Below are positions 3,993 to 63,688 of a stretch of 64,000 nt of DNA, piece by piece; within the stretch, counting starts at the first letter, position 1; every line of letters starts with the position of its first letter. Source of the DNA: Neoconidiobolus thromboides FSU 785 (lineage: Eukaryota; Fungi; Entomophthoromycota); NCBI GenBank assembly GCA_025603075.1, contig MU626262.1:1-64000 (forward strand), written 5' to 3'. A program made the position numbers and the translations under genes. The notes beneath the pieces are model-generated. The model made no database searches. It saw only the letters and a program-made list of their open reading frames with translations, and had not been told where the DNA came from.

Positions 3993-4096
3993 ATATGAGG
4001 ATTTTTTTTTTGGTTTCATTACTTTTTCCATTTTTTGAGCGTTATTTGAGCGGAAAGATTGTTAATAAAATTAAACAAAAAAATACATCCCCATAT
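3993..4096 (+). mobile_element. ~105-bp MITE-like element, copy M1
   Basis: ATATGAGG...TACATCCCCATAT ends; core TTTCATTACTTTTTCCA...GAGCGGAAAG...TTAATAAAATT shared with the other copies. Confidence 0.85.
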
Positions 4097-4125
4097 TATT
4101 GTTGTAGATTTATTTTTTAAACCTG

Positions 4126-4238
4126 ATATGGGAGTATTTTTTTGGCTTCATCTTCATCACTTTTTCCACCTTTTAAGTGCTATTTGGAATGGAAAATTTG
4201 TTAGTAAAATTCTTAAACACAAAAATACATTCCCATAT
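4126..4238 (+). mobile_element. MITE-like element, copy M2 (with small internal insertion)
   Basis: ATATGGGAG...TACATTCCCATAT ends; same core; 29 bp from M1. Confidence 0.85.
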
Positions 4239-4515
4239 CAAAGTAATTGAATATATTTTTTAAGTCAACAGTAAAAATTGAAATAATAATTAGTTGAGTC
4301 CAATGCTGTATCAATTTTGATTAAAAGTCACTAATTAATATAAATATCCTGTAATCAAGAGTATAATAACTTATGATATTAGAAGATGATAGAGGATATG
4401 AAATAAATATCAATATTATAAATCAAAAACAGATTTCTTTGTATTTAAAATTAACTCTTAAGACTTAATCAAATTCAATTAACTAATCAGATTAAAAACT
4501 CGTATTATTATAACA

Positions 4516-4554
<39 letters not shown>
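4516..4554. repeat. (AAT)13 microsatellite
   Basis: Perfect AAT run read directly. Confidence 0.9.
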
Positions 4555-4899
4555 TGTTATTTAATAGTAAATCAAATTAATAGCATGATTGCTTATTAAA
4601 CCAAGGAGAGAAAATGAGATATTAAAAAAAGTAACTGAAATTTTAAATTAAAATTAGCAGTAACTAAATTACAATAGCATAATTTAAGACAATTTCAACT
4701 AAATTTTAGTTAAAAGAAACGTTAAGATTGATTGATTGACTTTCGAAACTCTAAAAATAGTCAATAAAGTAAAGTTGAGAAAACAATAAAAACTCAAAAA
4801 AATTCAAAGACTATAAAAGTATATATACAATATTAATTTCTTTTTAACAAAACTAAACTTGATTTAAAAGAAAAGTTGATTTAAAATATTTCATTACGA

Positions 4900-8402: not shown

Positions 8403-10580
8403 CTAATTCTGAACCATACTTACTTTAGCTTCTAGTGTAGAATCTAAAGGTAAAACATTACTCCCTGCTCCATTTTCATCCGAAATAATACTATCTAAAT
8501 CATTACTTGTAGCTCCATCGGGTAAATTATTATTATTATTACTTGAGTTATCATTCAAAATATTATTAACATTAGCATCATTGACACCTGGTATTAATGA
8601 AATGTTAGTATTATTATTAGTACCGCTAGTAGGTCGAACAATTGGTGCAATTAATGTGTTAATTGATGGTTTGATAGTACTACTTGGAATAGCATTGGTA
8701 ATGAGGTTACTGATGGGTTTATTACTATTATTTATAATAGTAGATATTACTGGGAGTATAGGAGTGGCAATAGAAGCTTGATTTTGATTTAAATTACCAA
8801 TGACTGCATCTACATTAGTTGAGTTCAGTAAAGAACTACCATTGATAATTGGAGTTGAAGCGGTAGAAGTAACTATAAAGCTAGAAATATCTAACATACC
8901 TGGGGATTTAGAACACTGAATTGAAGATAAATTAAAACATGATATAGATTTGGAATTGTAGTTAAATTTCCAACATTTAGGACATTTCTCTCCAAAACAA
9001 GGCAATTCGGAATTTCCATTTAAATAACAAGTTTTATTTAAATAAAAGGATCTTTTACTATATTGCATTTGAGAAAATAAATTACTTTGATTACTTGTAC
9101 ATTTAAAATTGGACTGGAAATCATAACATTTATAAATCGATAAATTATTATCATATTCCCAACATGATGGACAATAATTCCCTTTACATAAAAATTTAAT
9201 ATCCCCATTAACATAACATCCTTTTTCTAAGATGTTAATCGAGTTATCAATTACGGTTGGTGGTATTGTTGGTAAAACATTATTAACTAAACTACCACCA
9301 GATACTAATTGAACAGCATCATCAACTTGATTACAACTACCATTAATTGTATTAAAACATTGAAAAGTTTGATCAAGATAATTAACATTCCAACAAGGTG
9401 GACAATTAGCCCCTGATTTACAAGGTAAATTTTTATTACCATTAATAAAACAGGATTTATTTTTAATATTATTACTGGTAATTTTAGGCATTAATGAAGT
9501 CATATCTTTGAATCCAGGATTACATTGAGAGTTCACTTTTTTATAACAAGAAAATCGATTATTAATAGAAATCCAGCAAGGGGGACATTTTCCTTTGCAT
9601 GGTATATTGAAATTACCATTTATATAACATATATTTAATGGGTTATATTCTGGTTGAAATTTAAATTCATTATTATTTTGAGTAACTATAGGCAAATAAG
9701 TCACTTGAGGAGGCCTTACTACTACAGTCACAGTAGAAAGTACAGGTTGATAAATAGTATCAGTAATTGTCGGAGGCTTCACTAATTGAGTAGAAACTTG
9801 TAAAGAAATAAATGTATTAGTTTGAATTTGAGTAGATGTAACGGTAGATGGTGGTAAACTAATAGTTTGAGTTTGCAATTGAACAGTGACAGAAGTGACA
9901 GTATTAGTTTGAGTTACAGTGGTAGTTTTAGGAGGTAAAGTAACCGTTTGAGTCTGAGTTTGTAATTGAATAGTAGTAGCGGTTATTGTAGTAGTTGTAG
10001 TACTTGGAGGTAAAGTAATCAATTGAGTTTGTAGTTGAGTTTGTGTTGATAATATAGTAGTAATTTCTGTTTGTGTTTGAATACTTGTTAATGGGGGTAA
10101 ACTTATGGTAGTTGTATGAGCTAAAATTTGAGTTTGAGTATATGTCACTGTAGGTATTGGTAAATAACTAGTTTGTCCATTGTTAGAAGTATAAGTAGCT
10201 ATTACAGTATGGATAGTATTAGTGGGATAAAAGGTTATGGGAAACAAATTTGATTGATTAGATGGAGGAAATATCACTGTTTGTATGTTGTTTCCTCCAT
10301 TATTGTTTATTAAATCATTTGGATTATTACTTCCTATTATTATCGTATTATTATTGGGAAATCCAATATTACCGTTGTTATTATTGTTAATGTTAATTGG
10401 AAAGGTAGTATTAATACCATTATTTATACCATTGTTATTATTGTTGTTATTGTTATTATTATTATTATCATTATTATTATTCGGAAGCAATAAATCATCA
10501 GGGTTAATAATCAGTTGATGTTCCTTAGCAATAATAAAAGAAAATAGTAATAAAAGTGAATAAAATTTTAATGAAAGCAT
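8403..10580 (-). CDS. Intronless secreted mucin/adhesin-like protein: Asn-rich, Thr-rich and four 6-Cys repeats
   Basis: Signal peptide MLSLKFYSLLLLFSFIIA; Thr/Gln-rich segment; four C(Y/F)xNG..C..CPxCW..C(Y/F)..C repeats; 725-aa ORF. Confidence 0.85.
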   Translation of the reverse strand: MLSLKFYSLLLLFSFIIAKEHQLIINPDDLLLPNNNNDNNNNNNNNNNNNGINNGINTTFPININNNNNGNIGFPNNNTIIIGSNNPNDLINNNGGNNIQTVIFPPSNQSNLFPITFYPTNTIHTVIATYTSNNGQTSYLPIPTVTYTQTQILAHTTTISLPPLTSIQTQTEITTILSTQTQLQTQLITLPPSTTTTTITATTIQLQTQTQTVTLPPKTTTVTQTNTVTSVTVQLQTQTISLPPSTVTSTQIQTNTFISLQVSTQLVKPPTITDTIYQPVLSTVTVVVRPPQVTYLPIVTQNNNEFKFQPEYNPLNICYINGNFNIPCKGKCPPCWISINNRFSCYKKVNSQCNPGFKDMTSLMPKITSNNIKNKSCFINGNKNLPCKSGANCPPCWNVNYLDQTFQCFNTINGSCNQVDDAVQLVSGGSLVNNVLPTIPPTVIDNSINILEKGCYVNGDIKFLCKGNYCPSCWEYDNNLSIYKCYDFQSNFKCTSNQSNLFSQMQYSKRSFYLNKTCYLNGNSELPCFGEKCPKCWKFNYNSKSISCFNLSSIQCSKSPGMLDISSFIVTSTASTPIINGSSLLNSTNVDAVIGNLNQNQASIATPILPVISTIINNSNKPISNLITNAIPSSTIKPSINTLIAPIVRPTSGTNNNTNISLIPGVNDANVNNILNDNSSNNNNNLPDGATSNDLDSIISDENGAGSNVLPLDSTLEAKVSMVQN

Positions 10581-11993: not shown

Positions 11994-12098
11994 ATATGGG
12001 GGTGTTTTTTTGGCTTCATTGCTTTTTCCATTTTTCAAGTGCTATTTGAGCCGAAAAATCGTTAGTAAAATTTTTAAACAACAAAATACATCCCTTAT
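11994..12098 (+). mobile_element. MITE-like element, copy M3
   Basis: ATATGGGGGTG...TACATCCCTTAT ends with the conserved core. Confidence 0.85.
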
Positions 12099-12715
12099 TT
12101 TAACATCACATAGAGATGTATAATAATATCTTAGTAATTGTTTAGTATGAACTCAAACTGAATTTATAAAAGATATTTTAAAGATAGAGTTTCAACTAAA
12201 TAAAAATAATATAATTTTAGTAAAAAAGCAAATTATTTTATTACTATATTAATATTTAATTGCTACTAATAATAGTATCATTTCATTTTATACATCTAGC
12301 TTAAACAATATACAAAACAAGTTATACTGTCAATAATTTTGCTATGAAATTATTAGTCTTCTATAATAATTCCAAGCTAATTTTAATTCCCTTAAACTCA
12401 CAAATGATAATAAGCCAACAATCTTCGATTATTGCCAGCTAATTAAAATTAATTGGTTAAAATAGCAAATGACTCTTCACATAAGATTGGATACGTTAAT
12501 AAGAATCAATGAATTTCATTGGTTAATAGACTCCAATTTAAAAATGACAAAAAATCACTAAAACAAGAGTAAGAAATTTAATGAGAATGAAAACTCCAAA
12601 TTTTCTTTATTCATTTATTCATTTATTTTATTAAAGGTAAAGATAAAAAATAATATAAAAAGCGGATTAGTGTTAACTTTAAGCTCTTATTTCTTTTTAG
12701 TAAGGATAAATTAAA

Positions 12716-14312
12716 ATGTCTTCTTTTCGATTTTTACATTTGATACGTCCTTTTGTGAATGTTATCCCTGAGGTAGCTTCTCCAGATAGAAAAGTAAGTT
12801 TAAAATAATCAAAACATTCAAATAGCAGACATTGATTTAACCTTTCCCTTAAAATTAGGTTCCTTTCAATCAAAAGATGTTATGGACTGCCATTACACTT
12901 TTTATCTTTTTAGTATGTTCTCAAATTCCATTATATGGTATTATGTCTAGTGATTCTTCCGATCCACTATATTGGATGCGTGTCATTCTTGCTTCTAATA
13001 GAGGTACTTTAATGGAGTTAGGTATTACTCCTATTATTACCTCTGGTATGATTATGCAAATGTTAGCCGGGGCTAACCTTATTGAAGTCGATTATTCTCT
13101 AAGAGAAGATCGTGCTCTTTTTGGGGCTGCTCAAAAATGTAAGTTTAAAATTTATTTTATATTGCTATCTTTTATTTATTTTATAAATAGTATTTGCTAT
13201 GATTATTACTTTTGGACAAGCTTTAGTATCTGTTATCACTGGACTTTATGGTAGACCAGCTGATCTTGGTATTGGTGTATGTATTTTGTTAGTTATTCAA
13301 TTATTTGTTGCTGGATTAATTGTGATTTTATTGGATGAATTGCTTCAAAAAGGATACGGATTAGGCTCTGGTATCAATTTATTTATTGCTACTAACATTT
13401 GTGAAACTATTATTTGGAAAGCATTTAGTCCAAGTACTTTTAATACCGGTAAAGGACCTGAATTCGAGGGAGCTGTTATTGCTTTCTTCCATCTTTTATT
13501 CACACGTCGTAATAAATTTAAGGCCTTAAATGAAGCTTTATTCCGCTCCAATCTACCCAATCTTTCCAACTTATTCGCTACTGTATTTGTATTTGCTTTA
13601 GTCATCTACCTCCAAGGTTTCCGTATTGAAATTCCAATCAAATCAAACAAAGCTCGTGGTTCAAGAGGTACTTTTCCAGTCAAATTATTTTATACTTCCA
13701 ACATGCCAATTATGCTTCAATCTGCTTTAACTTCCAATGTTTTCCTTGTTTCTCAAATGCTTTATATTCGTTTCCCTGAAAACTTTTTAGTCCGTTTATT
13801 TGGTGTTTGGGAGGTAAACAATAGTATCACTATTATTAGCAATCATATTAATTTTCTTATAGCCAATTGGAGAAAGTACTATGTTAAGTCCAGTATCTGG
13901 TTTGGCTTATTATTTACGTCCACCAAATGCATTTATTGAAGTATTACAAGATCCAATTCACTTTGTTGTTTACCTTGGATTTATCTTAGGAGCTTGTGCT
14001 TTATTCTCACGCACATGGATTGAAATTTCTGGCTCTTCACCACGTGATGTAGCTAAACAACTTAAAGAGCAAGATACTGTTATTGCAGGTCATCGTGATA
14101 CATCGATCTATAAGGTACTTAAAAAAGTCATTCCACAAGCTGCTACCGTTGGTGGTCTTGTTATTGGTTTACTTTCCGTCAGTGCAGATTTAATGGGTGC
14201 TATTGGTTCTGGTACTGGTATCCTTTTAGCTGTTACTATTATCTATCAATACTTTGAAATGTTTGTCAAAGAACAACAAGAAGCTGGTGGGCTTGCAGCT
14301 ATGATGAATTAA
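12716..14312 (+). CDS. SEC61: Sec61 translocon alpha subunit (3 coding introns)
   Basis: [22 protein letters not shown]|[44 protein letters not shown]; canonical GT-AG introns. Confidence 0.97.
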
Positions 14313-14439: not shown

Positions 14440-15642
14440 ATGCAAACTCAATCAGTCATATTAAATAATGGGAGCGTCATGCCTTTAATTGGGAGTAATT
14501 AGAATGATGATATATTACATAATAACATATAATAATAATAATAATAATAATAATAGTTGGCACTTATCGAATGAGAGATAAGTATCAGATTCAGGAAATA
14601 TTAACTGAAGGAATAGAAGTAGGTTATCGATTAATAGGTAATTTTTAAAAACATAACAAAATGCATTTAATATTTACTAAAATAATACAAAAAGATACAG
14701 CTCAAGTGTACAGAAATGAAGAAGTGATAGGTGGAGTTATTGAAGAATATTTAACTAATAATAAGGATAAAATTGAAAGAAAGGATTTGTTTATCACTAG
14801 TAAAATAGGTAATTAACTAAAATTAATAAATAGAATCCAATAAATGATAAAACTTATTTTATTTAGCTCCAAACAACCAAGGAGCGGATAGAGGCTATGA
14901 ATGTAAATTATTATTGTTACTTAAATCAATTATCTAAACAATAATAACCAATAGCTACTTTAGAAACGATAAAAAAATTACGTTTAGATTACATTGATCT
15001 AATGTTGATTCATTGGCCTGGTACTTCAAGGATTAGTCCCCAATCTCCTATGAATTCAGAATATCGAAAACAAACTTATCAAAGCTTAGAACGTTTGTAT
15101 CACGAAGGGATAGTCAAAAATATAGGCATCAGCAACTATACTTTATCACATTTAAAGGAATTATTAACTTATTGTCAAATTAAACCACAAGTTTTACAAA
15201 TAGAATACCACCCTTTATATCAATCGAAAGAAATCATAGATTATTGTAAGGAAAATGGGATACAAATTCAAGCCTATTCGTCCTTGGGAGAAGGGCAATT
15301 GATTAATGATGGTGATGAGTTTTTTAAACAGTTTTTAAAGTTCAATAAAAATTTGTTAAAGGAGAATGACATCAAAGGGCAATTAGTTGGTTTTCTGTTA
15401 AAATGGGCAATGTTAAAAAATATCGTGGTAATTCCAAAAACTAATAGTGTAAAACATTTAATTAGCAATTTTAATTATTTAAATATAGACTTGAATGAAA
15501 ATGTAAGTTTTTAACATTATGTTTCTATAGTATATCACATTAACTTTTTTAGATCAACGAATTTTTCAATAGCTGTATTTATGATAGTAAATATGAATTG
15601 AAATCCAACAAATTTTGTTGGGATCCAGAAACAGTTTTATAA
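14440..15642 (+). CDS. Aldo-keto reductase (spliced)
   Basis: Exons give MPLIG|GTY, DTAQVYRNE, LFITSK, LDYIDLMLIHWPG, IGISNY, QIEYHP, IPKT. Confidence 0.92.
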
Positions 15643-18629: not shown

Positions 18630-19515
18630 ATGAAAAAAAGAAGCGTTTGTTGTTGCATTTGTACATTTATAGTTGTTTTAATTTTGCTAGCCGCAGCCGC
18701 TGTTACTGCTTTCTTTTTATGGGCAAGACAACCAAGTGTTGAATTTAATGGAGCCTTACCACCCGAAAACTCCAAAGACTCATTTGTTCTAAATGGCGCT
18801 ACTGATTTTTCTTTTAATTTGAGGCTCAATTTTACCGTGGATAACCCTAACTTTATTGGCGCTACATTAAGCTCAATAGCTGCTGAAGTAAGTTTGAAGT
18901 ATTCTTTGAAAATCTTAAAATTGGTGTTAATAAATTCCTTAGGGCTCTTTACCAGTGAATAAACAAGTAACTTTAGCTACTGGTAGTCTTAAAGATGTGG
19001 GTATTAATAAGCAAGCAAAGACAAACATATTATTTCCTATTAAGGTTGATTATAAATTAAAAGATGATACTGATTTGCTGATCTTAAAATATATTGCGAA
19101 TAATTGTGGACTATTACAAAATACTCAAAGGGGACAATTAGAAGTGAATTATGACTTAAATATCGTGGCTAAAATTGTTGCTATCAATATAAATTTGCCT
19201 ACATTTTCAAATGATGCCAAGTTTGATTGCCCTATTCCGGTAAATATTATTATGATTTATTTTTATTGTTCATGTTTATGTTTATGTTTTTTTAATTAGG
19301 CTGGTACTAAAATACCTGGTTTGGATTTAATATTGAAATTATATAATGGTGGCTTACCTAATAACATTGATCCAAATGCTCTTATTGCTACTTTACAAAA
19401 GCAGATACCGAACTTAGATAGTGTTGACCCAAGTATATTGAATAACATTGATCCGAATACTTTGAATAATATTGGTAGTCAATTAGGACCTATTGCTACT
19501 AAGATATTAGGTTAA
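18630..19515 (+). CDS. Type II membrane protein with LEA_2-like domain (spliced)
   Basis: Cys-rich juxtamembrane segment, TM helix, then P.V.F..NFTVDNPN pattern typical of LEA_2; 3 introns. Confidence 0.7.
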
Positions 19516-21077: not shown

Positions 21078-21179
21078 TTATGGGTATGTTTTTTTTGGTT
21101 TCATCACTTTTTCATTTTTAAACACTATTTAAGCAGAAAGATTGCTAGTAAAATCCTTTAAAAAAATATATCCCACTAT
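21078..21179 (+). mobile_element. MITE-like element, copy M4
   Basis: TTATGGGTATG...TATATCCCACTAT ends with the conserved core. Confidence 0.8.
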
Positions 21180-21479: not shown

Positions 21480-22721
21480 TAATGTAAATATATAATGATT
21501 GTTATACTTGTATATAACTCCATACCAATTAAATCAATAAATTTGACCGATTTTATACTCTTGAATTGTAGCATAAAATAATCCATAAAAATACCTAAAA
21601 TGAGGCATTTGATATACTTAAATGCTATGCTATATAAGTTAAAATACTACATCGGTGTCAAAATAATAGTTTGTCATTTCGAGGTTTTGTAACGTAGGAC
21701 ACAGTGTATATAAGTACTAAAAAAATTGCTTACTAAAGTTAAATTTAGATAACTAATGTTATTATATTATTATTCTTTTTTAAATAAACATCTTCGATAA
21801 AAACTGATGAGATATAATATATCACTAAGTTTAAATAAGCAATCATTATCATTTTGAATATCAAATATAAATGCTCGGCTGATATATTTTTATAAAACAC
21901 TAAGTTAAGTTGCTTCAACTTTATATCGTTGAAAAGTCAACATTATAGTGGAGAATCAAATTTAAAGGAATTAAGATCAATTAACACTGGTATAACTAAC
22001 TTAGTCACAAATGATCAAATATTTCTAAAGCTCTCCAAGTTTTGGACAATCATTAAGTTGATATGTATTTCTTTAACTTTATTTCTATGCAAACAGTCAA
22101 AATGTAATTACTTTAGTTGCGAAAACTGCATATTTGATAAAGAAGTAAAAACATCCAACTCGATTTGGATATGATTTAATCTGAAATTTTTCAAGCTATA
22201 GAATTTACATAATAAAGCTACCAAATATGTAACTAAATCAAAGATATTATTTTGAATTATTAGTGAAGTAATGGTTGATGATAGATATAGTGGTGTTTCA
22301 AAGTAGCTTTTTGCACGATCAATCTTTAAATGCTTTAAATCTTCTAACACTTCTTTAATACTACCTCTATGAGTAAAAATATAACTATCAGCTCCCTCCT
22401 ATTCTGTCAACCAAACTGCTATAATATAAGCCTATCAGTCCAACATCTTTAAAATGCTCTTTGTTCTTTAAACAACTAACTAAGCCTATACATAGTTTAG
22501 TGTTATCTATGTATATTAATTGTTGATTAATTAATACATTTAATATAACACCCATCTTTTTTAAAACTAGCGTCGATTCATCTTGTAGTATTGGTAGCCC
22601 CGCTTTGGTTGATTCTTTATTAAAAAAGGAGTAACTTGAGCTTGTTTTTATATGGAAGATGTTATAAATAAATTCTACTATGCCCTTTTGGGATTTAAAA
22701 ACTCAAATTCTTACTCATCAT
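21480..22721 (-). pseudogene. Full-length but decayed F-box/LRR pseudogene
   Basis: From ATG-ATG at 22721: HLPYKNKLKLLL, LPILQD, EHFKDVGLIGLYY, INLNDCPKL, VYLKKNNNIITL, LYTLCPTLQNLE, FKYIKC..FKSIK, colinear with the intact paralogues but with many stops and frameshifts. Confidence 0.8.
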
Positions 22722-22774
22722 TTAAATTTGAAGTGAAGTGCTATTTGTTGACTTGTACGTAGGCGTTTCTCTCA

Positions 22775-22853
22775 GTTTCATTACTTTCTATTTTTGAGCA
22801 CTATTAAGCGGAAAAAATGTTAGTAAATTTCTTAAAAAAATACATCCTGATAT
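22775..22853 (+). mobile_element. MITE-like element, copy M5 (left end missing)
   Basis: GTTTCATTAC..GAGCACTATTAAGCGGAAAAAATGTTAGTAAA..TACATCCTGATAT. Confidence 0.75.
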
Positions 22854-22915: not shown

Positions 22916-23022
22916 ATATGGGAATGTTTTTTTTGATTTCATTATTTTTTCCATTTTTTAAGCGCTATTTAAGCGGAAAATTTGTTAGTAAAATTCTTAA
23001 ATACAAAAACACATCCCCATAT
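22916..23022 (+). mobile_element. MITE-like element, copy M6 (near consensus)
   Basis: ATATGGGAATG...ACATCCCCATAT; both CpGs intact. Confidence 0.9.
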
Positions 23023-23898
23023 AGTAATTACTATTCCACTTTTGGTTGTATTTTAGTGTTTGAATTCCAAACCATATTAAACTCTCGTTAACAGTTTCAT
23101 ACTATTATTTTATACACACATAGTGATTAAATTGTTACTTTTTTAAAATATAAATTACTACTTTTTATCATAAAAAGGTTATGATTTTTTGTTTAGTTTA
23201 ATATTAGATATCTATCTTTTATCCACTATTTTTATATATGTCCATATCTGATAATAGAAGATTTAATAAGTAATCTAAAATTATGGAAGTACATTTTAGC
23301 TATTATAATATTCAAAAAAAATAGCACAATAACACAAGTTTTTTAATTCTGAGAAAAATCTAACGCATTTTCATAAACTCTTTACAATCTCCCTGATAAC
23401 ATACCCATATTCCTTAATAAAACACTTGGCCATCAATGGATTATCCTTGGGATAATAATGTAACACTTCACTGAAAAAATATCAACTCACTTTTCACATA
23501 CCGTTAAGCAGCAATTATTGGTACTTTGATATCATATCATACCTTGGTATTCGGTCCATGACAAAAAGATCTTTCATTTATGTATTTATTATATTAAAGT
23601 TTGCCTCCCCCTTTTATAGCTTCTGCTCCTGCTTATTGCCATTGTTACCATTCGTAGATCACAATGCTATGGATATGACTGGTTGAAAAGTTAAGTAGAA
23701 ATGACAAAGAAGTGACGGACTGTATATTAATTAAAGGTAGAATAGATTATAAACTATCAAATTTTATTTTTTAGTTATTAGCGTTCTAAAATTCCTGCAG
23801 TTTATTTTTATATTGGCAGCATTGGAGCCACTATGTTTTAAATTACCTTTGATTTATATTCATATTTATATTTATATTTATATTTATATTTATAATTT

Positions 23899-24003
23899 AC
23901 AAGGGTGCTTTTTTTGATTTTGTCACTTTTCTTATCTTTTAAATGATATTTGAGTAGGAAGGTTGTTGGTAAAATCCTTAAACACAAAAATGTATCCCCT
24001 TAT
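23899..24003 (+). mobile_element. MITE-like element, copy M7 (degenerate)
   Basis: GGGTGCTTTTTTTG...GTAAAATCCTTAAACACAAAAATGTATCCCCTTAT. Confidence 0.7.
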
Positions 24004-28802: not shown

Positions 28803-30176
28803 TCATGGAAATAAAAATAGAGGATGATTAGAATATTTGACTAACTTGTATCTATCGTGCTTTGGAATTATAATTAACTTTATGCTTTTAAAAGATTTCA
28901 ATATATTATCAAGGAAGATATCTAAATTGGAGCTCCAAAAATACCTAAATATTACATTAGTTAAATTGGAGCTCCTTACTATCTTATGATTTGAAAATGG
29001 TATATCAATATCAAACCGGCATCCGGATATGTCAAGGGTATACAAATTGGGACATGACATATATATAAAATTTAAAAAATCGACCCCTAAGGTAGTACTA
29101 TTAACTTTTAATGTTATTATATTGTTGCTTTTTTTTGGATAAATTTCCCTAATTAAAAATAATGGATTGTGATGTGTTAACATATCAAAATAGGTGATTG
29201 TTGGGATGCTAAATATTGAATATAAATGTTTGGATAAGACATTTTTGCAATATTTTAGTGTTAGTTGATTTAGATTTGGGAATATACCTTTGCTTATATC
29301 TTGGTCAATTAAATTACAACCATACAGCGTTAGCTTCTTTAAATTTGATATACCGTTAAATATCAATTTAGAATACTTTAAAATATAAAGCTCTTCAAGC
29401 TTTGGATAATTGTTTAAATCCATACGTATTTCTTTTAAACCTTGCACACCTACATATTCAATATGAAGTTGTTTTAGTTCCGCGAAATGTTTACTTAATA
29501 GCAAGTTAAAGTTGTTTAATGCAATATTACTATTAGTTAACTTGAGTTTCTTTAAATTATTTAATTTATCCAATAAGTCCCAGAAACATACGAAGTCTAT
29601 ATAATGAATATACTGCAGTGTTATTGAAGTAATGGTTGATGGTAAATAAGGTACTATGGACACTACAAAATAACCATCTGGAGAAATGACTTCTAAGTAC
29701 TTTAAATTTTGAAATATTTCTTTGGTACAATTACCACTATCAGAAAAGTAATCACCAATCTCCATGTTATTGGTCTGCTTAGTGTAATAAAGGCCGACTA
29801 ATGGGATGTCCCCAAAGTGTTCTTCATGCCTCAAATAGCCATCTAAAGGCAAATAAAGCTCCATGCAATTTGGATAGATCAACTTGTAAATTGATGCTTC
29901 TGAAAAAATTCTGAGATTTAATTGTTTAATATGTTGACCATATTTTTTGAAGCTCTTATTTATCGCTTTTTCATACCCATAAATAAAACTATGAACCATA
30001 CACTCCCATAGTATTGGATTTATTATATTTTTCCACTTTTTACAGCAGGTAAGTAGATTGACTTTATCTTTAACTGAGAGATGGTATAAAATTTCTCTAG
30101 TTGCTTTTTCTCCGAGGTTCTCAAGTTTGAAACTACTGCCCATATCCAAATCAAACAAAGTGGTAAGCCCAGTCAA
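28803..30176 (-). CDS. Intronless F-box-like / LRR protein
   Basis: 457-aa ORF (true start may be Met at 30143) with ILYHLSVKDKVNLLTCCKKW..PILW F-box and LRRs; paralogue of 800..2137. Confidence 0.85.
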   Translation of the reverse strand: MTGLTTLFDLDMGSSFKLENLGEKATREILYHLSVKDKVNLLTCCKKWKNIINPILWECMVHSFIYGYEKAINKSFKKYGQHIKQLNLRIFSEASIYKLIYPNCMELYLPLDGYLRHEEHFGDIPLVGLYYTKQTNNMEIGDYFSDSGNCTKEIFQNLKYLEVISPDGYFVVSIVPYLPSTITSITLQYIHYIDFVCFWDLLDKLNNLKKLKLTNSNIALNNFNLLLSKHFAELKQLHIEYVGVQGLKEIRMDLNNYPKLEELYILKYSKLIFNGISNLKKLTLYGCNLIDQDISKGIFPNLNQLTLKYCKNVLSKHLYSIFSIPTITYFDMLTHHNPLFLIREIYPKKSNNIITLKVNSTTLGVDFLNFIYMSCPNLYTLDISGCRFDIDIPFSNHKIVRSSNLTNVIFRYFWSSNLDIFLDNILKSFKSIKLIIIPKHDRYKLVKYSNHPLFLFP

Positions 30177-30660: not shown

Positions 30661-30767
30661 ATATGGGGATGTATTTTTATGTTTAAGAATTTACTAACAA
30701 TTTTTCCACTCAAATAGCACTTAAAAGATAGAAAAAGCGGTAGAACCAAAAAAAAACACTCCTATAT
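30661..30767 (-). mobile_element. MITE-like element, copy M8
   Basis: ATATGGGGATG...ACACTCCTATAT; reverse orientation of the core. Confidence 0.88.
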
Positions 30768-35740: not shown

Positions 35741-35847
35741 ACATGTAGATGTATTTTTTTATTTAGGGATTTTACTGATAATAGCCTTTCCACACAAATA
35801 GTACTTAAAGAATGGAAAAACCAATAAAACCAAAAACACCCCCATAT
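35741..35847 (-). mobile_element. MITE-like element, copy M9 (degenerate)
   Basis: GATGTATTTT...CCAAAAACACCCCCATAT. Confidence 0.75.
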
Positions 35848-35927
35848 GCCAAAATCCTTTTTTTAAAAAACACTTCTATTTTATCACTTGACAACTCTAT
35901 ATTATATATCAGTAATATACTATTAAT

Positions 35928-36618: not shown

Positions 36619-36725
36619 CAATGGGGATGTATTTTTATGTTTAAGAATTTCACTAACAATTTTTCCGCTTAAATAGTGCTTAAAAGATACAAAAAGTAAT
36701 GAGTCCAAAAAAAACATCCCCATAT
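36619..36725 (-). mobile_element. MITE-like element, copy M10
   Basis: ATGGGGATGTATTTTT...AAAACATCCCCATAT. Confidence 0.88.
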
Positions 36726-36797
36726 AATCAACTTTGATAAAAAATCAATTATTTCTTTAATCAAAATTACTTTAAATCTATAATATGTAATTTTAAC

Positions 36798-36904
36798 TAT
36801 TGGGGGTATTCTTTTTGGTTTCATTACTTTTTCCATTTCTCAAGCACTATTTGAGCGGAAAACTCGTTAGTAAAATTCTTGAACACAAAAATACACCCTC
36901 ATAT
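36798..36904 (+). mobile_element. MITE-like element, copy M11
   Basis: TTGGGGGTAT...ATACACCCTCATAT; inverted relative to M10, about 72 bp away. Confidence 0.88.
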
Positions 36905-37356
36905 TAAAACTAAGCATAACAAAATTTTTATTGTAATTATTAAATGTAAATATTAAAATATAAAAACAATGTTTTTTGTAACTAAAAAGTAAAAATTTTT
37001 AACTATAGTTATAACTATATTTTTATATATAACGTTTCAATACAATAAATTTTTTCAAACTGTTTTTAGCATTGTTTTTTTTAGTAAAATTATTAAGCTT
37101 CTCATATAAATGTTTTATATAACTCATAGCCTATACACATTATTTTTATATTTTATATTTGTTTTAATTATATAAAATATACAAGTATAGAATACTTATT
37201 AATAAATTATATAAAATAATAAAAATAAAGTATAATAATTATTCAAATAACCAGAATACAAATTATAAAACTAGTTTTTGTAATTTATATTATTTTGTTA
37301 AATTATTAAAAGCTATTAAAACTTTTAAATTAATTTACATAAGTAACATTATTCTA

Positions 37357-37442
37357 TTTAAGAATTTTACTAACAATTTTTCTACCCAAATAGTACACCT
37401 AAAAGATGAAAAAATAAGGAAGCCAAAAAAACATCCCAATAT
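37357..37442 (-). mobile_element. MITE-like element, copy M12 (truncated)
   Basis: TTTAAGAATTTTACTAACAATTTT...GCCAAAAAAACATCCCAATAT. Confidence 0.75.
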
Positions 37443-37831
37443 AATGCTTATAAAAGTAATATTTATAACTTTAATAAGGCTAAATTCATAATAAACAATA
37501 TAATAAATAAGGAGTTAGAGCAAAAAATAATAATAAATATATTTCTTATATTTAACAAAAATTATTAATGTAACACTTTAAAGCTTTTTATTAAATTATA
37601 TTCTAATATTATACTTTTCAATGAAGCTATTAAATAATAATATTAAACAAATACTATAAAAAAACATATTTATAGAATAAAGCTCTTATTGATTATAAAA
37701 AACAACATTGATTTGTTAAAAAATCTAATCAGTATTTAATAAAAAAAGACAGTTATAAGTACCAAAATTAAAAATTGGAACCAGTTAATTAAACAGTATT
37801 ATAAGAAATATAACAAAGAGTAGATCATGTA

Positions 37832-37900
37832 TCTTTTAAACACTCTTTAAGCGGAAAAATTGTTAGTAAAATTCTTAAACATAAAAACACACCCCCATAT
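37832..37900 (+). mobile_element. MITE-like element, copy M13 (right part)
   Basis: TTTAAGCGGAAAAATTGTTAGTAAAATTCTTAAACATAAAAACACACCCCCATAT. Confidence 0.8.
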
Positions 37901-38013
37901 ACTAATATTGACTTTATTAAAATTTCATCTCAGTACTCCTGTAGTTAACTATATATTTAAAAGTATGTTAAATATAAAAAAATTATTTTATTATATAGTC
38001 TATAAAAAGTTAA

Positions 38014-38095
38014 CGACAGCTACAGGATTTGAACCTGTGCGGGGAAACCCCATCAGATTTCAAGTCTGACTCCTTAACCACTCGGACAAACTGTC
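38014..38095 (-). tRNA. tRNA-Ser(UGA), intronless, 82 nt
   Basis: GACAGTT acceptor pairing with AGCTGTC, anticodon arm TCAGA-CTTGAAA-TCTGA, long variable arm, GGTTCAAATCC B box. Confidence 0.95.
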
Positions 38096-38245
38096 AGTCA
38101 GCGTTGCTCTATAAGAAAAGAATTTTATTTAATTCACTAGTTATTTTAAAAATAAACAATTCAATCCCAATCCAATGATTAATATTTTCGATAAAATTAG
38201 TCAATTTGAGTTCTCTTTTTTATTCTAAGAAATCGATACATCAAG

Positions 38246-41200
38246 ATGATGACCTCAGACAATGAAAGAAAATTGATGCGGATTTATGGTATTGGATTTT
38301 GGAAATTAACAGTTTAATAAAAGATGATATTAATATTTTATTATTGTATTTAGATCATCTGGAAAGAGAAGATTATAAATCAGCACTTAATGATATGAAT
38401 TTATTATTAAAAAAAATATCAAATCATTACCTTTTGGTAAGCTATTAGTTAATCTTGACATATTAAGTTAATAAATAAATTTATTAAATAAAATTTCTTA
38501 TAGTCTTTTAAAGCGTATATACTTAGTAAATTAAATAGAAGAGAGGAAGCCATAGAATTAGCTTTGAAAGTTAAGAATAATTATCCAAAGGCTATCAGTA
38601 CCATACAAAATTTAAGTATGGTATTAAAAAGCGCAGGAAAAGGTAAGTTTTTATTGAAGTTTTAATTAAACTTATGTTAGTAATATTTGGTATTTTGAAT
38701 TTTAATTAATTTTTTCTCACTTATATATAGGAAAAGATATTCTGGAATTATATGAAAAAGCATACCCTGGACAAGAAAAAGACTTGGAATTTTGTACACG
38801 TTATTTTGAAGCCTTAGTTAAAGAAAAAGATTTTAAAAGTATGCAGAGTTTAACAATTAAATTACATCGTGACTTTAAAGATCGGAAATATTGGTATTGG
38901 GCCATCATGTGCTTAGTTTTGCAAGCGGAGGATTTAAAGAAAAATAATCCTGAAGCTTTTAAAAAAGATATTAGTTATGTATTAGCGGAAAGATATATCG
39001 GAAAAAGTTATCAAGAAAAAAATATTAAAAATTTTGAGGAATTTTATTTATATTATTTAGTTTTGATGGGTCAAAATAAACAGGATTTAGCTTTAAATTG
39101 GTTAACTAATGAATTATCTGAAACTAAAATGATTAAAGATCAATTAAGGTTTACCCTTTTACCTCATTTAATTAGAATGAAGAAATATGATGAGACAATT
39201 GTGTACTGTAAAAAGTTTATTCTGGATAATAGGTAATTTAATAATATAAGTGAATAATAGTAATGTTTTAAATTTGTTAATTCAATTTTCAATTAGTGAT
39301 GATTGGTTTTATTGGAGTCATTATTTAACTGCAGTGGAGAATAAAGTTAAGGAAGAGTAAGCTTTTACTTTATTAAAAGTAAACTTTAAAATAAAATATT
39401 AATAACTTAAATAGCCAAAACGAAAACTTTATAAAAGAAGAAGAAAACTATATTAACAATATATTAAATCAACATCAAAACTCTAAAAAAGCAAAGAGGG
39501 GCCCTTATTTAGCTAAAATTAAGTTTTGGTCGATTATTAAAGGTAGTATATTATTATTAATTAAAAATCTATTAATATGAATTTGTTTATCTTAGAAAAT
39601 ATTTTTGAAATAATGTTAAATTATATCGATAAATTTGGTACTAAGTCATGTTGTTATGAGGACTTATTACCATATATAGAAGGCACATTGGATGAATATA
39701 AAAATGATTGGAGTAATTATTTAGGCAATAAAATTCAATCAATTTCTATTAATAATAATAAGGTAAATTTAAAGTTTAATTTATATTTTAAGTAAATAAT
39801 ATTAATAATGTATTTTGAACTTATATAGCAAAAGGATATTCAAAATTGTCATTTATTATCGAATTTATTTAAAATTCAAAAACTAATTAATAGTCAACAA
39901 ATTTATATAAATGGAAAACTCGATATTAATGTAGAAAAACATTATGATTTGATTCAACAATTAATAGATTTTTACTCAAAAGCACTATTATTAGGTAATT
40001 ATTATTAAAACTAAATAAATTTATAATAAAAGTAATATATTTATTAATAATTTTATTTAGGTCAAGATTTAAATACGAGTGAAAAACAATATGGAGATGA
40101 TTTCATTTTGTTAGCAAGTCATTATCTATTAGAACTATATCATTATGAAAAAGATAGTTATCATTTATTGAGTATTGCATTATTATTAGAATATGCCATT
40201 GTTAAATCTCAATTTAATTTTCATATTAAAATATTTTTAATTAATATTTATATTTTAATTGGTAAGTTAAAAATTATTTAAATATTAAAATTAAAATAAT
40301 AATTTATATTGTTATTATTTAATTAGGGGTCTATCATCGTGCTTCTAAACTTTATAATACATTGGATATTAAACATGTTCAATTGGATACATTGAGGTAA
40401 TTTACTTGTAACTATAATTATTTCATATTACTAATTGAATTCCAATATTAGTTATTTAATAATGGATAATGGGAATAATTTAGCTCATTTTACAGAAACT
40501 TATTCTCATGGTCACAGTTCTACTAGTATTTATTTTCGTAACAGAGTAGAAGTAAGTTAATTTATTGTTTGTAATAATTTACATATTAAATTAAATTATT
40601 TATCTTATTAAATAGACATCGGAAATGTTAGTTCAAGCATTTAAACATGGTACTTATTCCAAAGTAAGAGAGATAACAGCATTTATATTTATATATTTAT
40701 ATTTATATATTTATATATTTATATATTTATATTATAAATTAAGATTGATATTAATGTAATTATTTTATTATTTTATTAGGTCCAAGAATTTCTTCGATTT
40801 CAAAATCGACTAGAAAACTCGTTACAAAAAAATATTAATGAATTTGAAATTTTAAGATCAGAATATCTATCTTCTTTTTTTAATGAAAAGGATTTAATAG
40901 AATTATTAAATTCATTACCAACAGAATTCTTTGAATGGGAAGAAAGTAATTTATTTTCGTATTTATTTTGTTTATTATATTGACATTAATATTTCTGTGT
41001 GTTTTTAGATGATTTAATTGATAATCGAGATTTTGATGTATTTTTAAATTTTAATTTATCAACTATTCCGAATATATCAACTCATTCTTTATTAAAGTTA
41101 TCAAAGGTTACCAATGTAAGCGATTAAGTTGTTTTTAATATTAATATATTAACTACTTTTTTATTTAGCCTAAATTACTTCAATATCATCAATTTGATTT

Positions 41201-46338: not shown

Positions 46339-46420
46339 CGACAGCTACAGGATTTGAACCTGTGCGGGGAAACCCCATCAGATTTCAAGTCTGACTCCTT
46401 AACCACTCGGACAAACTGTC
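46339..46420 (-). tRNA. tRNA-Ser(UGA), identical to 38014..38095
   Basis: 82/82 nt identical by eye to the first copy; flanks differ. Confidence 0.95.
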
Positions 46421-46536: not shown

Positions 46537-46641
46537 ATATGGGGGATACATTTTTTTGTTTATGAATTTTACTAACAGTCTTTCTGCTCAAATAGCACTT
46601 AAGAATGGAAAAAGTAATGAAATCAAAATACATCCCCATAT
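46537..46641 (-). mobile_element. MITE-like element, copy M14
   Basis: ATATGGGGGATAC...ATACATCCCCATAT. Confidence 0.88.
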
Positions 46642-56369: not shown

Positions 56370-56467
56370 ATGTAGGGATGTATTTTAAGAATTTTATTAA
56401 CAATCTTTCCGCTCAAATAATGCTTAAAAAATGGAAAAAGTAATGAAACCAAAAAACATCCTCATAT
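56370..56467 (-). mobile_element. MITE-like element, copy M15
   Basis: GGGATGTATTTT..CCGCTCAAATAATGC..AAACATCCTCATAT, 49 bp beyond the EF-G stop codon. Confidence 0.85.
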
Positions 56468-56516
56468 AACATATAATTATTTATTCTAATGCTTCTTTCT
56501 AAAATTTTAGATTAAC

Positions 56517-59088
56517 TTATGCTTTACCTTCAGACTTTTTCTTAGCATAATCTTTAACCATATCTTCTTGAACATAAGGTGGGACTGGGGAGTGCTCAAA
56601 ATACTCCATAGTGAACTCACCTTTGCCTTGGGTAGCTGATCTTAATTCTGTAGAATACCCAAACATGTTATTTAATGGTACGCGACATACGGCTTGGAAA
56701 TAATCTTCTTGTACTTCCGAATCAACAATAGTACCTTTACGTCTGTTGATAGATCCCATTACAGTACCTTGGAACTCTACTGGTGCACTGATTTCTACAG
56801 TCATAATAGGTTCTAATACAACTGGGCTGGTTTTAGGGTAAGCTTCTCTGAAGGCATGGAAGGCGGCAGTTCTGAAGGCTAATTCTGAGGAATCTACAGA
56901 GTGAGCAAGACCATCTTCAAGTACTACTTTAACACCTTTAACTCTATGGCCAATCAAAGGACCCTTTTCTAAAGCATCTTGGAAACCCTTATCTACAGCT
57001 GGTATATAATTTTGTGGGATAGTACCACCTACTACTTGATCTAAGAATTGGAATTCAGGTACAGTACTATCTTCATCTTCAGCATTCTCAAACTCAGTTG
57101 GATCAATGGGCTCAATATAACCAATAACACGACCAAACTGTCCAGAACCACCGGTTTGTTTCTTATGAGTATAGTTAAACTCTGCTTTTTGAGTGATTGT
57201 TTCTCTAAATGCTACTTGGGGTTTTCCGGTCACACAATCGACTCCATACTCTCTCTTTAATCTTTCGACATAAATGTCCAAGTGTAATTCTCCCATACCT
57301 GAAATAATGGTTTCTTTGCTTTCAGCATCTAAATGAACTCTAAATGTGGGATCTTCTTTTTGGAATCTATTTAAGGCCTTGGAGAAAGAGCCTGTATCTT
57401 TAGTTTTTGGCGTTAACGATAGTGATATTACTGGGTCTGGTACAAACATTGATGTCTATTATAAAAAATTATTATTGAAAATATGTCATAATACAATATT
57501 TAGCTATTACCATTGAAAGGTTGACTTTACCATCAGTAAAAGTATCCCCAGAAGCACATTCAATACCAAATAATGCACAAATTTCACCGGCACCTACTCT
57601 ATCAACGTCCTAAATAAAAAATATTAGTGTTGAATTACTTTTTGATTTTATGTCATAATAATCTACTTACCTCCATTTCATTTGAATGCATTCTCACTAA
57701 TCTGGCAATCTTGATCTTTTTACCAGTTTTGATATGAGTGACATTGGTTCCTTTAACAAGCTCTCCTTGATAAACACGGACATAGGTTAATTGACCATAT
57801 TTTCCTTCTTCTAGTTTGAAAGCAAGACCAACGAAGTTATTATTCGAGTAAGGTACTAAATCAACTACAGCTTCTTGATTTTTGAGATCCAAGGCAGTAT
57901 TTTTAACCTCAAATGGTTTAGGTAAAAATTTAACGACACCATCCAATAAAGTTTGGATACCTTTATCTTTAATGGCACTACCCATCATTACAGGTGTAAA
58001 TTTCAATGCCAAAGTAGCCCTTCTGATAGCCAACGACAATTGTTCAGAAGTTGGTTCTTCTTCCATTAAAAACAATTCAGCTATTTCATCATCCACATTG
58101 GCCAAATTTTCAATTAATTCCATACGTTTGATCTTTGCTTTTTCCATTAAATCTTGTGGTATCTCTTTAGTAACAATATCTGAACCTCTGTAGCCTTCGT
58201 TATAGATAGCTTTCATTTCAATGAGATCAATCACACCAGCAAACTTATCTTCGGTGCCAATAGGAATTTGAAGTGCTGCTGATGGGATCTTTAATTTTGC
58301 TCGGATCTGTTCCACAATACGGTCTGGATTAGCACCTGCACGATCCATCTTATTAATAAATGATATTCTTGGTACATTGTATCTTTTCATTTGCCTATCT
58401 ACAGTGATAGTTTGGGATTGTACTCCAGATACTGAACATAATACTAATACTGCACCATCTAATACTCTCAATGCTCTTTCAACTTCAATAGTGAAGTCAA
58501 CATGGCCTAGAAGTAGATTTTAATCAACTGGTTAATGATTTTGACTTAAATAACTTACCAGGGGTATCAATAATGTTCAAATTGGTTTCATTCCATTTAC
58601 AATAAGTGGCAGCAGATTGAATGGTGATTCCCTTTTCTCTTTCTAACTCCATAGAATCCATCTTTGCCCCAACGTTATCTTTACCACGTACTTCATGAAT
58701 CTCCTTGATTCTGCCGGTGTAAAATAAAACACGCTCAGTTAAAGTGGTTTTTCCACTGTCTATATGTGCTGAAATACCGATATTTCTTAAGCGATTTAGA
58801 CGTAACTAATAGGAAAAATTAAGTGAATTAGAATATAAAGTGTAATCTTTTTACCCAATCTTTTTCTTCAACACCTTCTGGGGGAGCAGAAATATTTAAA
58901 GAAGGGGAATATGAGGCTGAATAGTTACGAATGGGATTGAATTTATAAATTGAATTAAAATTGTTAGTCATGCTATTGACCTTTTGAGCCTCATTGTAGA
59001 AATTGAGATTGATAACTCTCTTTCCTATTGGATTCGATCTCTTTGAGATGGCTCTTAATGATAGACTGCTTAATCTTCTTAAACTCAT
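56517..59088 (-). CDS. MEF1: Mitochondrial elongation factor G1 (spliced)
   Basis: Presequence, [39 protein letters not shown]|[34 protein letters not shown]. Confidence 0.97.
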
Positions 59089-60420: not shown

Positions 60421-61150
60421 CTTAAAATTTTGTTAAAATGAATTTTGATTGATTTTGTAATGATCAATCTCAATCTAATCATTTTTTAAACTATGTCCCA
60501 TAAGTTTTAGGGTTAATTTTTATAAATTATCTGGAAATTTTTAGCTGAAAATATCCGTTCTATGTAAATAATTTAAAATGAATAAGTAATAGTTGAGCTA
60601 ATGTTTGATGATTTGTATGAAGCATTCTTAGTTTTATACTATATGTATTTATATTAATTTTAATTTTATCATCCTATTCAACTAGCTAGGCTAAAATAAT
60701 ATAAATGTTCTTGTTTCAAAAGTTTACTAAAATTTTCTAAATTTTTCAAGCTTTATGCTACATAAAATATGGCCAAATCACTGAAGTGAAAAAGACAACC
60801 CTGTATAAAACTGTATAAACTTTATAAAAAATTTACAAGAGGAATGTGTAAAATATTCAAGTGATACGATGTGCATTTTCATGCTAATATTATATAGCAA
60901 CTATATTACATAGAAGACATATTTATGTCATATATACGAAGTTGACGTTTTTTATAAACATAGCTTCATGCTAAATATTCTTTATAACATAAATAAGAAA
61001 AATTATTATTCAGAAAAGGTTTAACAAGAAAATTCATTTAAAAATAATATAAGTGGTAATTTTTAATGCTACATCATGATAAAATATAAAATAAAATAAA
61101 GGCATTTATTTATTAAAAACATAGAAAAATAGCTAACAAAATATTTTTAT

Positions 61151-61913
61151 TCAAAGGATAAAGTTACATAATAAAGAAATCGAAAAAACAAAAGCCAACT
61201 TTGCACTAATAAATGTGTTAGCATTATTCGCTGAAGAGCTACTTGGGTTTGGTATACTTGAGCTTGATTTACTTTGACTTGACCCATTTTGACTTGATTT
61301 ACCTTCATCTAGTTTACTTTCAAACTGGTGATCATTTCCTTTAAAAACTTTACAACATGATTCGGTACAAATATAATAATAAAACTTGTTCAGATCATTT
61401 TTAATGATATCGTCAGAAATCGGACTATCGCCAAAACAGAAATAATTACCTTTGGTTATGACATTTTCAGCTAAGTCGTATTTAAAATCTTTTTTGAAAT
61501 CATCAGCTGATAGATCAATATTGTATTCTTTTGGATTACTTTCATTTGGTCTACTTTTATAACGTTTATTATTTCCTTTAAACACTTTACAATAAGACTC
61601 ATTACAAATAGAATAAAAAAAATTTTCAAGGTTGTTAGTGACTATATCGTTGCTTATTGAACAGTCACCAAAACAGCAATAGCTATCTATACATGCTATT
61701 GATTCACTCGAACTTTGGTTAAAAAATGTCCTCAAATTGTAATCTGATAATTTAATAGTGTAGTTTTTTTCCATACATTTACTTTGAAGTAAGTAAAAAG
61801 TCAATATTTGACAAATTATTGATTCTCAAGTTATTTATATTTCTAATTTATGATGATGTAATGTAACAACCAATAGAACATCAAGATAGTCACTGGACTG
61901 TGACTAGCTTCAT
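61151..61913 (-). pseudogene. Cys-repeat, GPI-signal surface protein (copy A); 5' end apparently frameshifted
   Basis: ORF 61151..61804 has two (D/N)SYxCFGD..I..D...N.L..F.Y.IC.ES.CKVFKG repeats, a Ser-rich spacer and a hydrophobic C-terminal tail. The ATG at 61913, in the same GGTCAAAA context as copy B, hits TGA at codon 8 and is out of frame. It could still be translated from a downstream Met. Confidence 0.6.
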
Positions 61914-62815
61914 TTTTGACCATACTGTTCTATTTACTATTTTACTTTTATGAGTTTACCAAACTAATTTTTATGGTGCTAATGTCATATGAGATTAATG
62001 AAAAAGTGATTTTTTATAAAATCTTGGAAACTAAAGTTGGGTTCTAAAATTGTCAAATTCGATCCTAACTTAAATTCGAAACTAATTGTATTATTCCAAG
62101 TATTTGATGGAATATCGTGTATAAAGTAAGCTGCCATTAGAAAAGCATTTTGGTTTTTACCTTATTATGTTATTTTCAAAAAAGATTCCACTTTAAATTA
62201 TGATATGATAGCATAGCTGATAAGCCGAGTAAAGCATTGATGTGATAAAAAAATGTGTTACTCATCCTTCAAAAAACATACATAGTTGGACGTGTTAAAT
62301 TGTGCTGTTTGTAATAAGTAGTAAGAAAGCTCATTTTTTAGAATCCAAAAAACCACTCCACTTTAATAATCTATGTTAACTATCTAGTATATCTTTTAGT
62401 ATAAGTAATACTCAATAGGCATCTTCATAAATATCTAGAAAGCTGAAAAGCTGGTATTAAGCTAAATTCTATTTTCTAATGCAATAAATCATCTGTTGAG
62501 ATTTGCTTACAGACTTTACTATTGAGTATACATTTTATAGCAACTTCAATATTGAATTGATATAATTTTTCGACACTATTCTTCAAAAGTTTTCTATCAA
62601 ATCCCTCACATTATATTCGAGAGGTTCTACAGAAATAGAAATGCTTCTTTTTATCTGACAACAATGTAAGCATTGTTTTTTATAGCATTAAAATAAATGT
62701 GTTATTTTGATAGATGCTTAAATAAAACTATTTTATCTTGAAGTATAATAGTTGCATATTTTTTGATACGAGATCATGCTTAAACAGAAGGATTTAAAGA
62801 TCAGTATTTTTATTT

Positions 62816-63520
62816 TTATAAAAATAAATTATATATTAAGGAAACAGAAGGAAACAAGACCATTTTTCCATCAACTATGAAATTAATATGGGGGTATTTG
62901 TTTGATTTCATTACTTTTTCCATTTTTTAAGCGCTATTTAGGTGGAAAAACTTGCTAGTAAATTCTTAAACAAAAAAGTACATACTTATATTGTTTACAG
63001 AAGAGGTGCTTGGATTTCGTTTATTTAAGCTTAACTCATTTGGATTTGACTCACTTTCATCAAGTTTACTTTCGAATTGGTAGCCACTTTCTTTGAAAAT
63101 TTTACAATAGGACTCATTACAAGTATTATAATAGGATTTATTGAGATTGTATTGATTGATATCACAAGAGATTGGGTTATCTCTAAAACAGAAATACTTA
63201 TTATTGCGTCTGAATTGTTCATTTAAGTTGTGTTTAAAATCTTTTTTGAAATCATCAGCTGATAGATCAATATTGTATTCTTTTGGATTACTTTCATTTG
63301 GTCTACTTTTATAACGTTTATTATTTCCTTTAAACACTTTACAATAAGACTCATTACAAATAGAATAAAAAAAATTTTCAAGGTTGTTAGTGACTATATC
63401 GTTGGTTATTGAACAGTCATCAAAACATCAATAGCTATCTATACCATTAACATTTGACGATATAATATAAGGACTAGTCAAATAGAAACTAGTAGTTATT
63501 AGATTCAGGACTGCTTTTAT
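62816..63520 (-). pseudogene. Cys-repeat GPI protein copy B, disabled and interrupted by MITE M16
   Basis: Start is ATA (63520), TGA in DSY*CFDD, and the GPI tail is split by the element; the tail resumes at 62885 and ends TAA at 62816. Confidence 0.85.
62886..62991 (+). mobile_element. MITE-like element, copy M16 (inserted in coding sequence)
   Basis: ATATGGGGGTAT...GTACATACTTATAT flanked on both sides by coding sequence of copy B. Confidence 0.92.
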
Positions 63521-63663
63521 TTTTGACCAATATTGTGCTATCTACTATTTCACCTTTATTAGAACTTTAGTAAACTTGATTTTATAGAGTTATTATTATA
63601 TGAAATCAATATAATCATAATTTTTAAAATTCTAGAAAGCTCAAAGAGACTCTAGAAACAACT

Positions 63664-63688
63664 GAAACTAAAAAAAACATCCTCATTT
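63664..63688 (-). mobile_element. MITE terminal fragment M17
   Basis: GAAACTAAAAAAAACATCCTCATT matches one element end; the core is absent. Confidence 0.45.

Follow-up and report, generated by a model that had tools for sequence, protein, structure and literature searches.

A dense, old family of 99-bp miniature inverted-repeat transposable elements, probably of the Sola type, in the fungus Neoconidiobolus thromboides

Duplication of an AWWT tetranucleotide at the target is a hallmark of Sola1 transposons, and the MITEs (miniature inverted-repeat transposable elements) of this group have ends that start with GG (PMC3845634). The non-autonomous Sola1_NA MITEs of Bombyx mori and Rhodnius prolixus, which make 4-bp duplications of the form AWWT or AWDT, are 194-709 bp long, carry inverted ends of 28-36 bp (GGACCG...) and reach a few hundred copies at most (PMC3845634). 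Sola2 elements have been described from two dictyostelids, Dictyostelium fasciculatum (DFa-1, DFa-2 and DFa-3) and Polysphondylium pallidum (PPa-1, PPa-4 and PPa-5), together with non-autonomous derivatives; they make AT-rich 4-bp duplications (AWWT; ATAT, AAAT, ATTT) and have inverted ends of 12-21 bp (PMC3627910), which start with G and finish with C (PMC3627910, Additional file 11). Among fungi, a 2017 survey of cut-and-paste transposons recorded a single Sola2 case and found Sola1 mostly in Rhizophagus (PMC5751038). Here we analyse a stretch of the Neoconidiobolus thromboides FSU 785 assembly GCA_025603075.1, namely bases 1-64,000 of scaffold MU626262.1 (hereafter the window), which is AT-rich (G+C 19-31%) and in which a short fold-back repeat recurs in both orientations. 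N. thromboides is an insect-associated fungus. The repeat is a real, very dense and old MITE family. It belongs to a type of transposon that is already known but seldom reported from fungi, and is no new kind of system; very probably it is a 99-bp non-coding, non-autonomous cut-and-paste element of the Sola type that was mobilised from elsewhere in the genome.

The original prediction had described 17 copies or fragments of a ~105-bp element, about one per 4 kb and in both orientations. An iterated nhmmer profile likewise finds 17 copies in the window, 10 on the plus strand and 7 on the minus strand, so that a copy occurs every 3.8 kb on average and the family takes up 2.5% of the window DNA. 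Fifteen of these are full-length; the copy at 37828-37898 is missing the 5' third, and the one at 60705-60801 has diverged strongly. The terminal 12-mer ATATGGGGATGT, with at most one mismatch, occurs 14 times in the window as against 0.29 times expected from shuffles. For a larger sample, five further stretches of the same assembly (L015-L019) were fetched through paralogues of an F-box-like gene family. The consensus of 36 copies is nearly letter-identical to the one first proposed and is 99 bp long (GGGGATGT...ACATCCCC), or 107 bp with the ATAT that usually stands on each side; individual copies span 90-105 bp. Its perfect terminal inverted repeat is just 8 bp (GGGGATGT/ACATCCCC, 8/8); over the first 20 positions about 17 match. 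The flanks past the ATAT or other 4-mer are unrelated between copies and no copy contains an open reading frame (ORF), as had been claimed on both counts. Two further 12-mer matches, at 23399-23410 and 32451-32462, are bare 12-13-mers beside which nothing else of the element is present, and were rejected as solo termini. A longer right end, considered for an extension past the ATAT shared by four copies, was also set aside, being convincing just for the L013 pair described below.

For the ATAT flanks, two alternatives had been offered: a 4-bp AWWT duplication, for which Sola1 was named, or a TA duplication of the Tc1/mariner/IS630 kind. Under the second, T...A would be the outermost bases of the element. 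ATAT flanks fit both models equally, and with such flanks even an empty site cannot tell them apart; the informative copies are those flanked by something else. Such copies are too few in the window itself (TTAT/CTAT and TTAC/TTAT). Among the 36 full copies, the same 4-mer stands on both sides in 20, of which 13 have ATAT and 7 another tetranucleotide (ATTT three times, and ACAT, ATTA, ATAC and ATCT once each), while the flanks of none are related as inverted complements. Shuffling the right flanks 100,000 times never gave as many as seven non-ATAT matches, the shuffle mean being 0.72. Identical non-ATAT pairs beyond what shuffling yields, none of them inverted, argue that the four bases are an insertion duplication and not part of the inverted repeat. 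Furthermore, the middle dinucleotide is TT, CA or TC in five of the seven matched non-ATAT duplications, and since it is not fixed to TA, the 4-bp AWWT alternative stands and the TA alternative falls. The MITE makes a 4-bp direct target duplication. Its preferred site has A at position 1 (32/36 left flanks, 30/36 right), T at position 2 (34 left, 31 right), either A or T as its third base and, in most cases, T as its fourth.

The fold-back palindrome that had been noted is real in near-consensus copies, in which the DNA hairpin has an energy of -12.8 to -14.2 kcal/mol (z -2.8 to -3.7 relative to shuffles). In older copies this fold has been lost (z -0.5, +0.4 and +1.5), and RNAalifold gives the consensus RNA fold of 19 copies an energy close to zero (-0.45 kcal/mol). 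Scored against the complete fold-back, the copies have 83.9% of their cells paired, compared with 84.5% when partners are shuffled; no covariation was detected among them (score 0.144, against 0.154 in shuffles), and double changes are fewer than in shuffles. A search of Rfam gave no match to the MITE, even at E<=1 over the hotspot. The missing covariation, the weak consensus fold, the unfolded state of old copies and the lack of an Rfam match together indicate that the hairpin is inherited from a master copy and not selected, and that it decays freely, as expected of transposon ends.

These results bear directly on other accounts of the repeat. A Stowaway-like MITE of the Tc1/mariner/pogo group, built as T-GGGG...CCCC-A and duplicating just the TA inside ATAT, would fit the ATAT flanks by themselves as well as the 4-bp model does, and Stowaway elements share with this family a small size, AT-richness, fold-back structure, high copy number and a location near genes. 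Stowaway duplicates TA, however, whereas this MITE duplicates four bases with a variable middle pair: the five copies with ATTT, ACAT or ATCT on both sides lack a central TA, two more (ATTA and ATAC) match at the outer positions, and the TA model would require matching mutations on both sides in each such copy, which leaves it with almost no chance of being correct. A dispersed structured RNA gene or regulatory hairpin under selection, for example a small-RNA precursor or a terminator, would not be a transposon at all; it would be consistent with the better-than-shuffled folding of near-consensus copies, with their intergenic location, often a few hundred bases from gene ends, and with the presence of copies in RNA-library contigs. 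We nevertheless regard it as very improbable, given that the pairing shows no covariation and is no better than with shuffled partners, that the consensus fold is nearly without energy and older copies are unfolded, and that the copies occur in mixed orientation, match nothing in Rfam and carry target-site duplications.

The reading of the family as a non-autonomous DNA transposon, made in the original prediction, is supported by the 4-bp duplications, the short inverted ends and the absence of coding capacity, and the AWWT-type duplication, short ends and G...C termini are the reasons for filing it as Sola-type. This putative assignment comes from DNA hallmarks, the AWWT-type 4-bp duplication and the G...C ends, by which Sola1 and Sola2 are not separable, since neither the window nor the other loci contain a transposase. 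With the dictyostelid Sola2 elements the MITE shares AT-rich AWWT direct duplications of 4 bp, short inverted repeats, G...C ends and an AT-rich host genome; unlike them it has an unrelated terminal sequence (GGGGATGT here, GAGG/GAGC/GAAT and GTT(T)AAA there), is 99 bp long without a coding part, lives in a fungus and is known here without its transposase. It resembles the Sola1_NA MITEs in being non-autonomous, in its 4-bp duplication and in inverted ends that start with GG, and differs from them in its 99-bp length, its 8 perfect terminal bases and its copy number, which is estimated to run into the thousands for a genome of some 25 Mb.

Several observations weigh against the Sola-type transposon. 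No transposase-like ORF and no longer element with these ends was found in the six stretches (the window and L015-L019), so that DNA hallmarks have to carry the superfamily assignment. In the window, the search for long elements with the MITE ends, solo termini and transposase-like ORFs found none, in keeping with the earlier claim that it holds no autonomous partner, and the gene-free, MITE-rich parts of L017 and L018 likewise contain no long element and no transposase-like ORF. It should be noted that Pfam has no Sola model (PMC5751038). The first 11 bases mismatch the published Sola2 termini of D. fasciculatum and P. pallidum at more than one position, while the family rule of Repbase aligns terminal positions 1-11 to a known member with at most one mismatch (PMC4455052); the ends differ from those of the published DFa and PPa Sola2 and the Sola1_NA elements, and just the outermost G...C is shared. 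No insertion polymorphism was seen between strains for the five copies checked, those at 35744-37898, which are present in X3 and/or X4 wherever a contig bridges; mobility was thus not seen directly and is what we infer from the duplications. Moreover, other superfamilies make 4-bp duplications, as Ginger1 and Academ do. Ginger2 also uses 4-bp sites, with a preference for TATA (PMC3845634).

A MITE of another or undescribed superfamily with 4-bp duplications, such as Ginger or Academ, would be consistent with the mismatch with published Sola2 ends. Ginger2 targets 4-bp AT-rich sites as well (PMC3845634), and the features that point to Sola are how long the duplication is, which bases it contains, and the G...C ends. 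Such another superfamily seems unlikely to us, because the TATA preference of Ginger2 is not that of this MITE, which uses ATAT, ATTT and similar sites, A-first and mostly T-last, in the AWWT manner that marks Sola (PMC3845634), and because its ends, perfect over 8 bp and imperfect over roughly 20 bp, are similar to those of Sola2, which measure 12-21 bp (PMC3627910). For the Sola-type element we propose the following course of events. A transposase encoded elsewhere in the genome would recognise the short inverted ends 5'-GGGGATGT...ACATCCCC-3', make a 4-base staggered cut at an A-T-W-T-like site, mostly ATAT, and insert the element there; gap repair would then duplicate the four target bases. 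By our estimate the family has grown to thousands of copies, and it has since aged; insertions persist only between genes, and the copies decay neutrally. Which transposase acted, and that it did so by cut-and-paste chemistry, are the parts of this proposal that we infer.

The density of the family is not peculiar to the window. There are 4 copies in the 19 kb of L015 and 19 matches in the combined 69.6 kb of L016-L019, and the total of 40 matches in about 153 kb from six scaffolds, 23 of them outside the window, again corresponds to one per 3.8 kb. Contigs of two other strains over 32400-38399 have a summed depth of about 100,000 on near-consensus copies, from more than 5,000 contigs, as against about 50 on single-copy sequence, and although summed contig depth is no strict copy number, this suggests thousands of copies genome-wide. 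Extrapolated to the approximately 25 Mb of the strain contig sets, the MITE would make up roughly 2.5% of the genome, equal to its share of the window. Among metagenome contigs, the most conserved 19-mer of the MITE gave 10 matches, all of them due to chance and limited to the seed.

A published analysis of repeats in N. thromboides described the genome as predominantly non-repetitive, with 13.5% repeats, and is silent on both MITEs and Sola (PMC11105155). Present once in about 4 kb, a Sola-type element of 99 bp, with its estimated 2.5% of a genome of some 25 Mb, would be a useful annotation correction and would give this rare superfamily one more record from fungi. The copies also offer ready markers, both to type strains and to study how selection acts on insertions when a genome is compact.

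Identity to the consensus ranges from 77 to 95% with a median of 88% over the 36 copies, and the first 19 copies that were aligned have a mean Kimura two-parameter distance of 0.15, with star-like decay and transitions outnumbering transversions about 4:1. The two CpGs of the MITE (columns 59-60 and 71-72 of the A2 alignment, in GCGC and GCGG) are changed in 41% of cells, nearly always to TG, CA or TA, while the figure for the remaining C/G positions is 18.5%, an excess that fits either cytosine methylation or a general CpG mutation bias. An empty site was sought at 62890 through a pair of Cys-repeat paralogues (62700-63080 and 60950-61330), whose similarity stops exactly at the MITE 62890-62987; this candidate was rejected, as the sequence on the other side of the MITE is unrelated. 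The second Cys-repeat gene has lost its C-terminal hydrophobic tail. In Entomophthora muscae, the nearest genome in the protein collection, with an Rrp8 of 62% identity, the 21 kb searched contained no copy, intergenic DNA there being too distant to align.

Where copies sit is far from random with respect to genes. All 33 copies in gene-called stretches are intergenic, although 46% of the bases in those stretches are genic, and for the 10 window copies alone the chance of such an outcome is about 2e-4. In the gene-called parts of the window, 57% of ATAT sites lie inside genes and yet no copy does, so that target availability is not the explanation. The simple reading of the intergenic bias is selection against genic insertions in a genome with introns of 43-53 nt, and introns this short may be the reason that genes do not tolerate an element of 99 bp. 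Introns of this size, six in number, were seen with RNA contigs in the Arv1-like gene at 34109-35122 (minus strand).

Copies also lie close to one another: 15 of 31 have a neighbour within 250 bp, where 6.25 are expected (P = 0.004). Some pairs are in tandem (3997/4132 and 22762/22920), some head-to-head (36623/36802, L015 4915/5026 and L018 18100/18238), and one is tail-to-tail (L017 15057/15161, spanning 15057-15251), with a single ATAT shared by its members, the arrangement to be expected from insertion of one copy into the target duplication that the other had made. Both members of the L018 pair have matched duplications of their own (ATTT and ATAT), and pairs of this sort are separate insertions. 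The head-to-head pair at L013/L015 4899-5147 is of another kind, in that its palindrome extends 20 bases past the ATATs (AAAAAGTATAGTCATT... versus ...AATGACTATACCTTTT, one mismatch); reaching into the flanks as it does, it looks like an inverted duplication of a copy together with its flank and not like two independent insertions. Two tRNA-Ser(TGA) genes in the window, at 38013-38096 and 46339-46420, are identical over 84 bases. A MITE copy lies within 115-120 bp of either gene, 3' of the first and 5' of the second, an association that with two genes is only suggestive. The pairing above chance, the flank-extending palindrome, the copies near tRNA genes and gene ends, and those in RNA-library contigs could be read as signs that the family is still moving by local hops, growing palindromes by hairpin-primed repair, or supplying a compact fungal genome with hairpin small RNAs or regulatory modules; we consider this unlikely.

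The first 25 kb of the window contain seven copies, all on the plus strand. Those of the first tandem pair, 3997..4092 (nhmmer E 1e-22) and 4132..4236 (E 5e-22), are both flanked by ATAT/ATAT, and the second has an internal 6-bp duplication. The copy at 11998..12095 (E 5e-26) occupies, by the gene calls, a divergent intergenic region between genes at 8403-10580 (minus strand) and 12716-14312 (plus strand), and the one at 21083..21176 (E 3e-17) is that with TTAT/CTAT flanks. The second tandem pair joins an old copy at 22762..22852, with 80% identity to the consensus (E 6e-15), to a near-consensus copy at 22920..23018, also found by nhmmer, which has ATAT/ATAT flanks and a DNA hairpin of z -2.8. 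The oldest full copy, at 77% identity, lies at 23902..24000 within a (TTTATA)n microsatellite; it has the flanks TTAC/TTAT, and its fold is lost (z +1.5).

Further along, a copy at 30665..30763 (minus strand, ATAT/ATAT) is about 520 bp upstream of the F-box-like gene 28803-30143 (minus strand), and the copy at 35745..35843 (minus strand) was found in strains X3 and X4 too. The near-consensus copy at 36623..36721 (minus strand) adjoins a longer TG...CA repeat (36158-36620) and faces head-to-head the near-consensus copy at 36802..36900 (plus strand), which was recovered from X3 as well, as was the old copy at 37344..37437 (minus strand), the right end of which has decayed. Next to the first tRNA-Ser gene, at a distance of 115 bp, is the 5'-truncated copy 37828-37898 (plus strand), which covers profile positions 30-100; the copy at 46541..46637 (minus strand) stands 120 bp 5' of the second. 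At 56373..56462 (minus strand) a copy begins 55 bp past the stop codon of an EF-G-like ORF (56517-57449, minus strand) and is probably in its 3' untranslated region. The last two are the very diverged member at 60705..60801 (minus strand), recognised by nhmmer (E 5e-12) and alignment, and the copy at 62890..62987 (plus strand), where the similarity of the two Cys-repeat paralogues stops.

The TG...CA repeat is 463 bp long, starts TGTGAAAT and ends ATTTCACA, with 8-bp inverted ends. It occurs at 36158-36620 in the window and at 12183-12643, 18895-19358 and 20904-21349 in L018, and two of these four copies end no more than 14 bp from a MITE. Its strain-contig depth rises to 85,000, against about 50 for single-copy sequence, and it is abundant in RNA-library contigs too. 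One copy is flanked by TAAA/TAAA, whereas candidate duplications at the others are imperfect; the repeat may be a solo long terminal repeat or a larger inverted-repeat element.

F-box-like genes lie at 800-2137, 28803-30143 and 31661-32631 in the window, with relics near 2884-3543 and 21755-22287, and further members occur on L015, L016 and L018. The family has 22 cluster representatives at E<=0.001 in a global protein library, most of them without a Pfam match, and it is lineage-specific, expanded and turning over. The 5.5-kb scaffold MU626746.1 (L016, bases 1-194) overlaps bases 1-194 of the window in reverse orientation with 100% identity, and MU626746.1 and MU626262.1 probably join at this overlap. 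Finally, X3 and X4 both have 21 extra bases at position 37547, bounded by a 9-base direct repeat (ATATTTAAC); the reference strain has lost them through a small deletion, with which the MITE has nothing to do.

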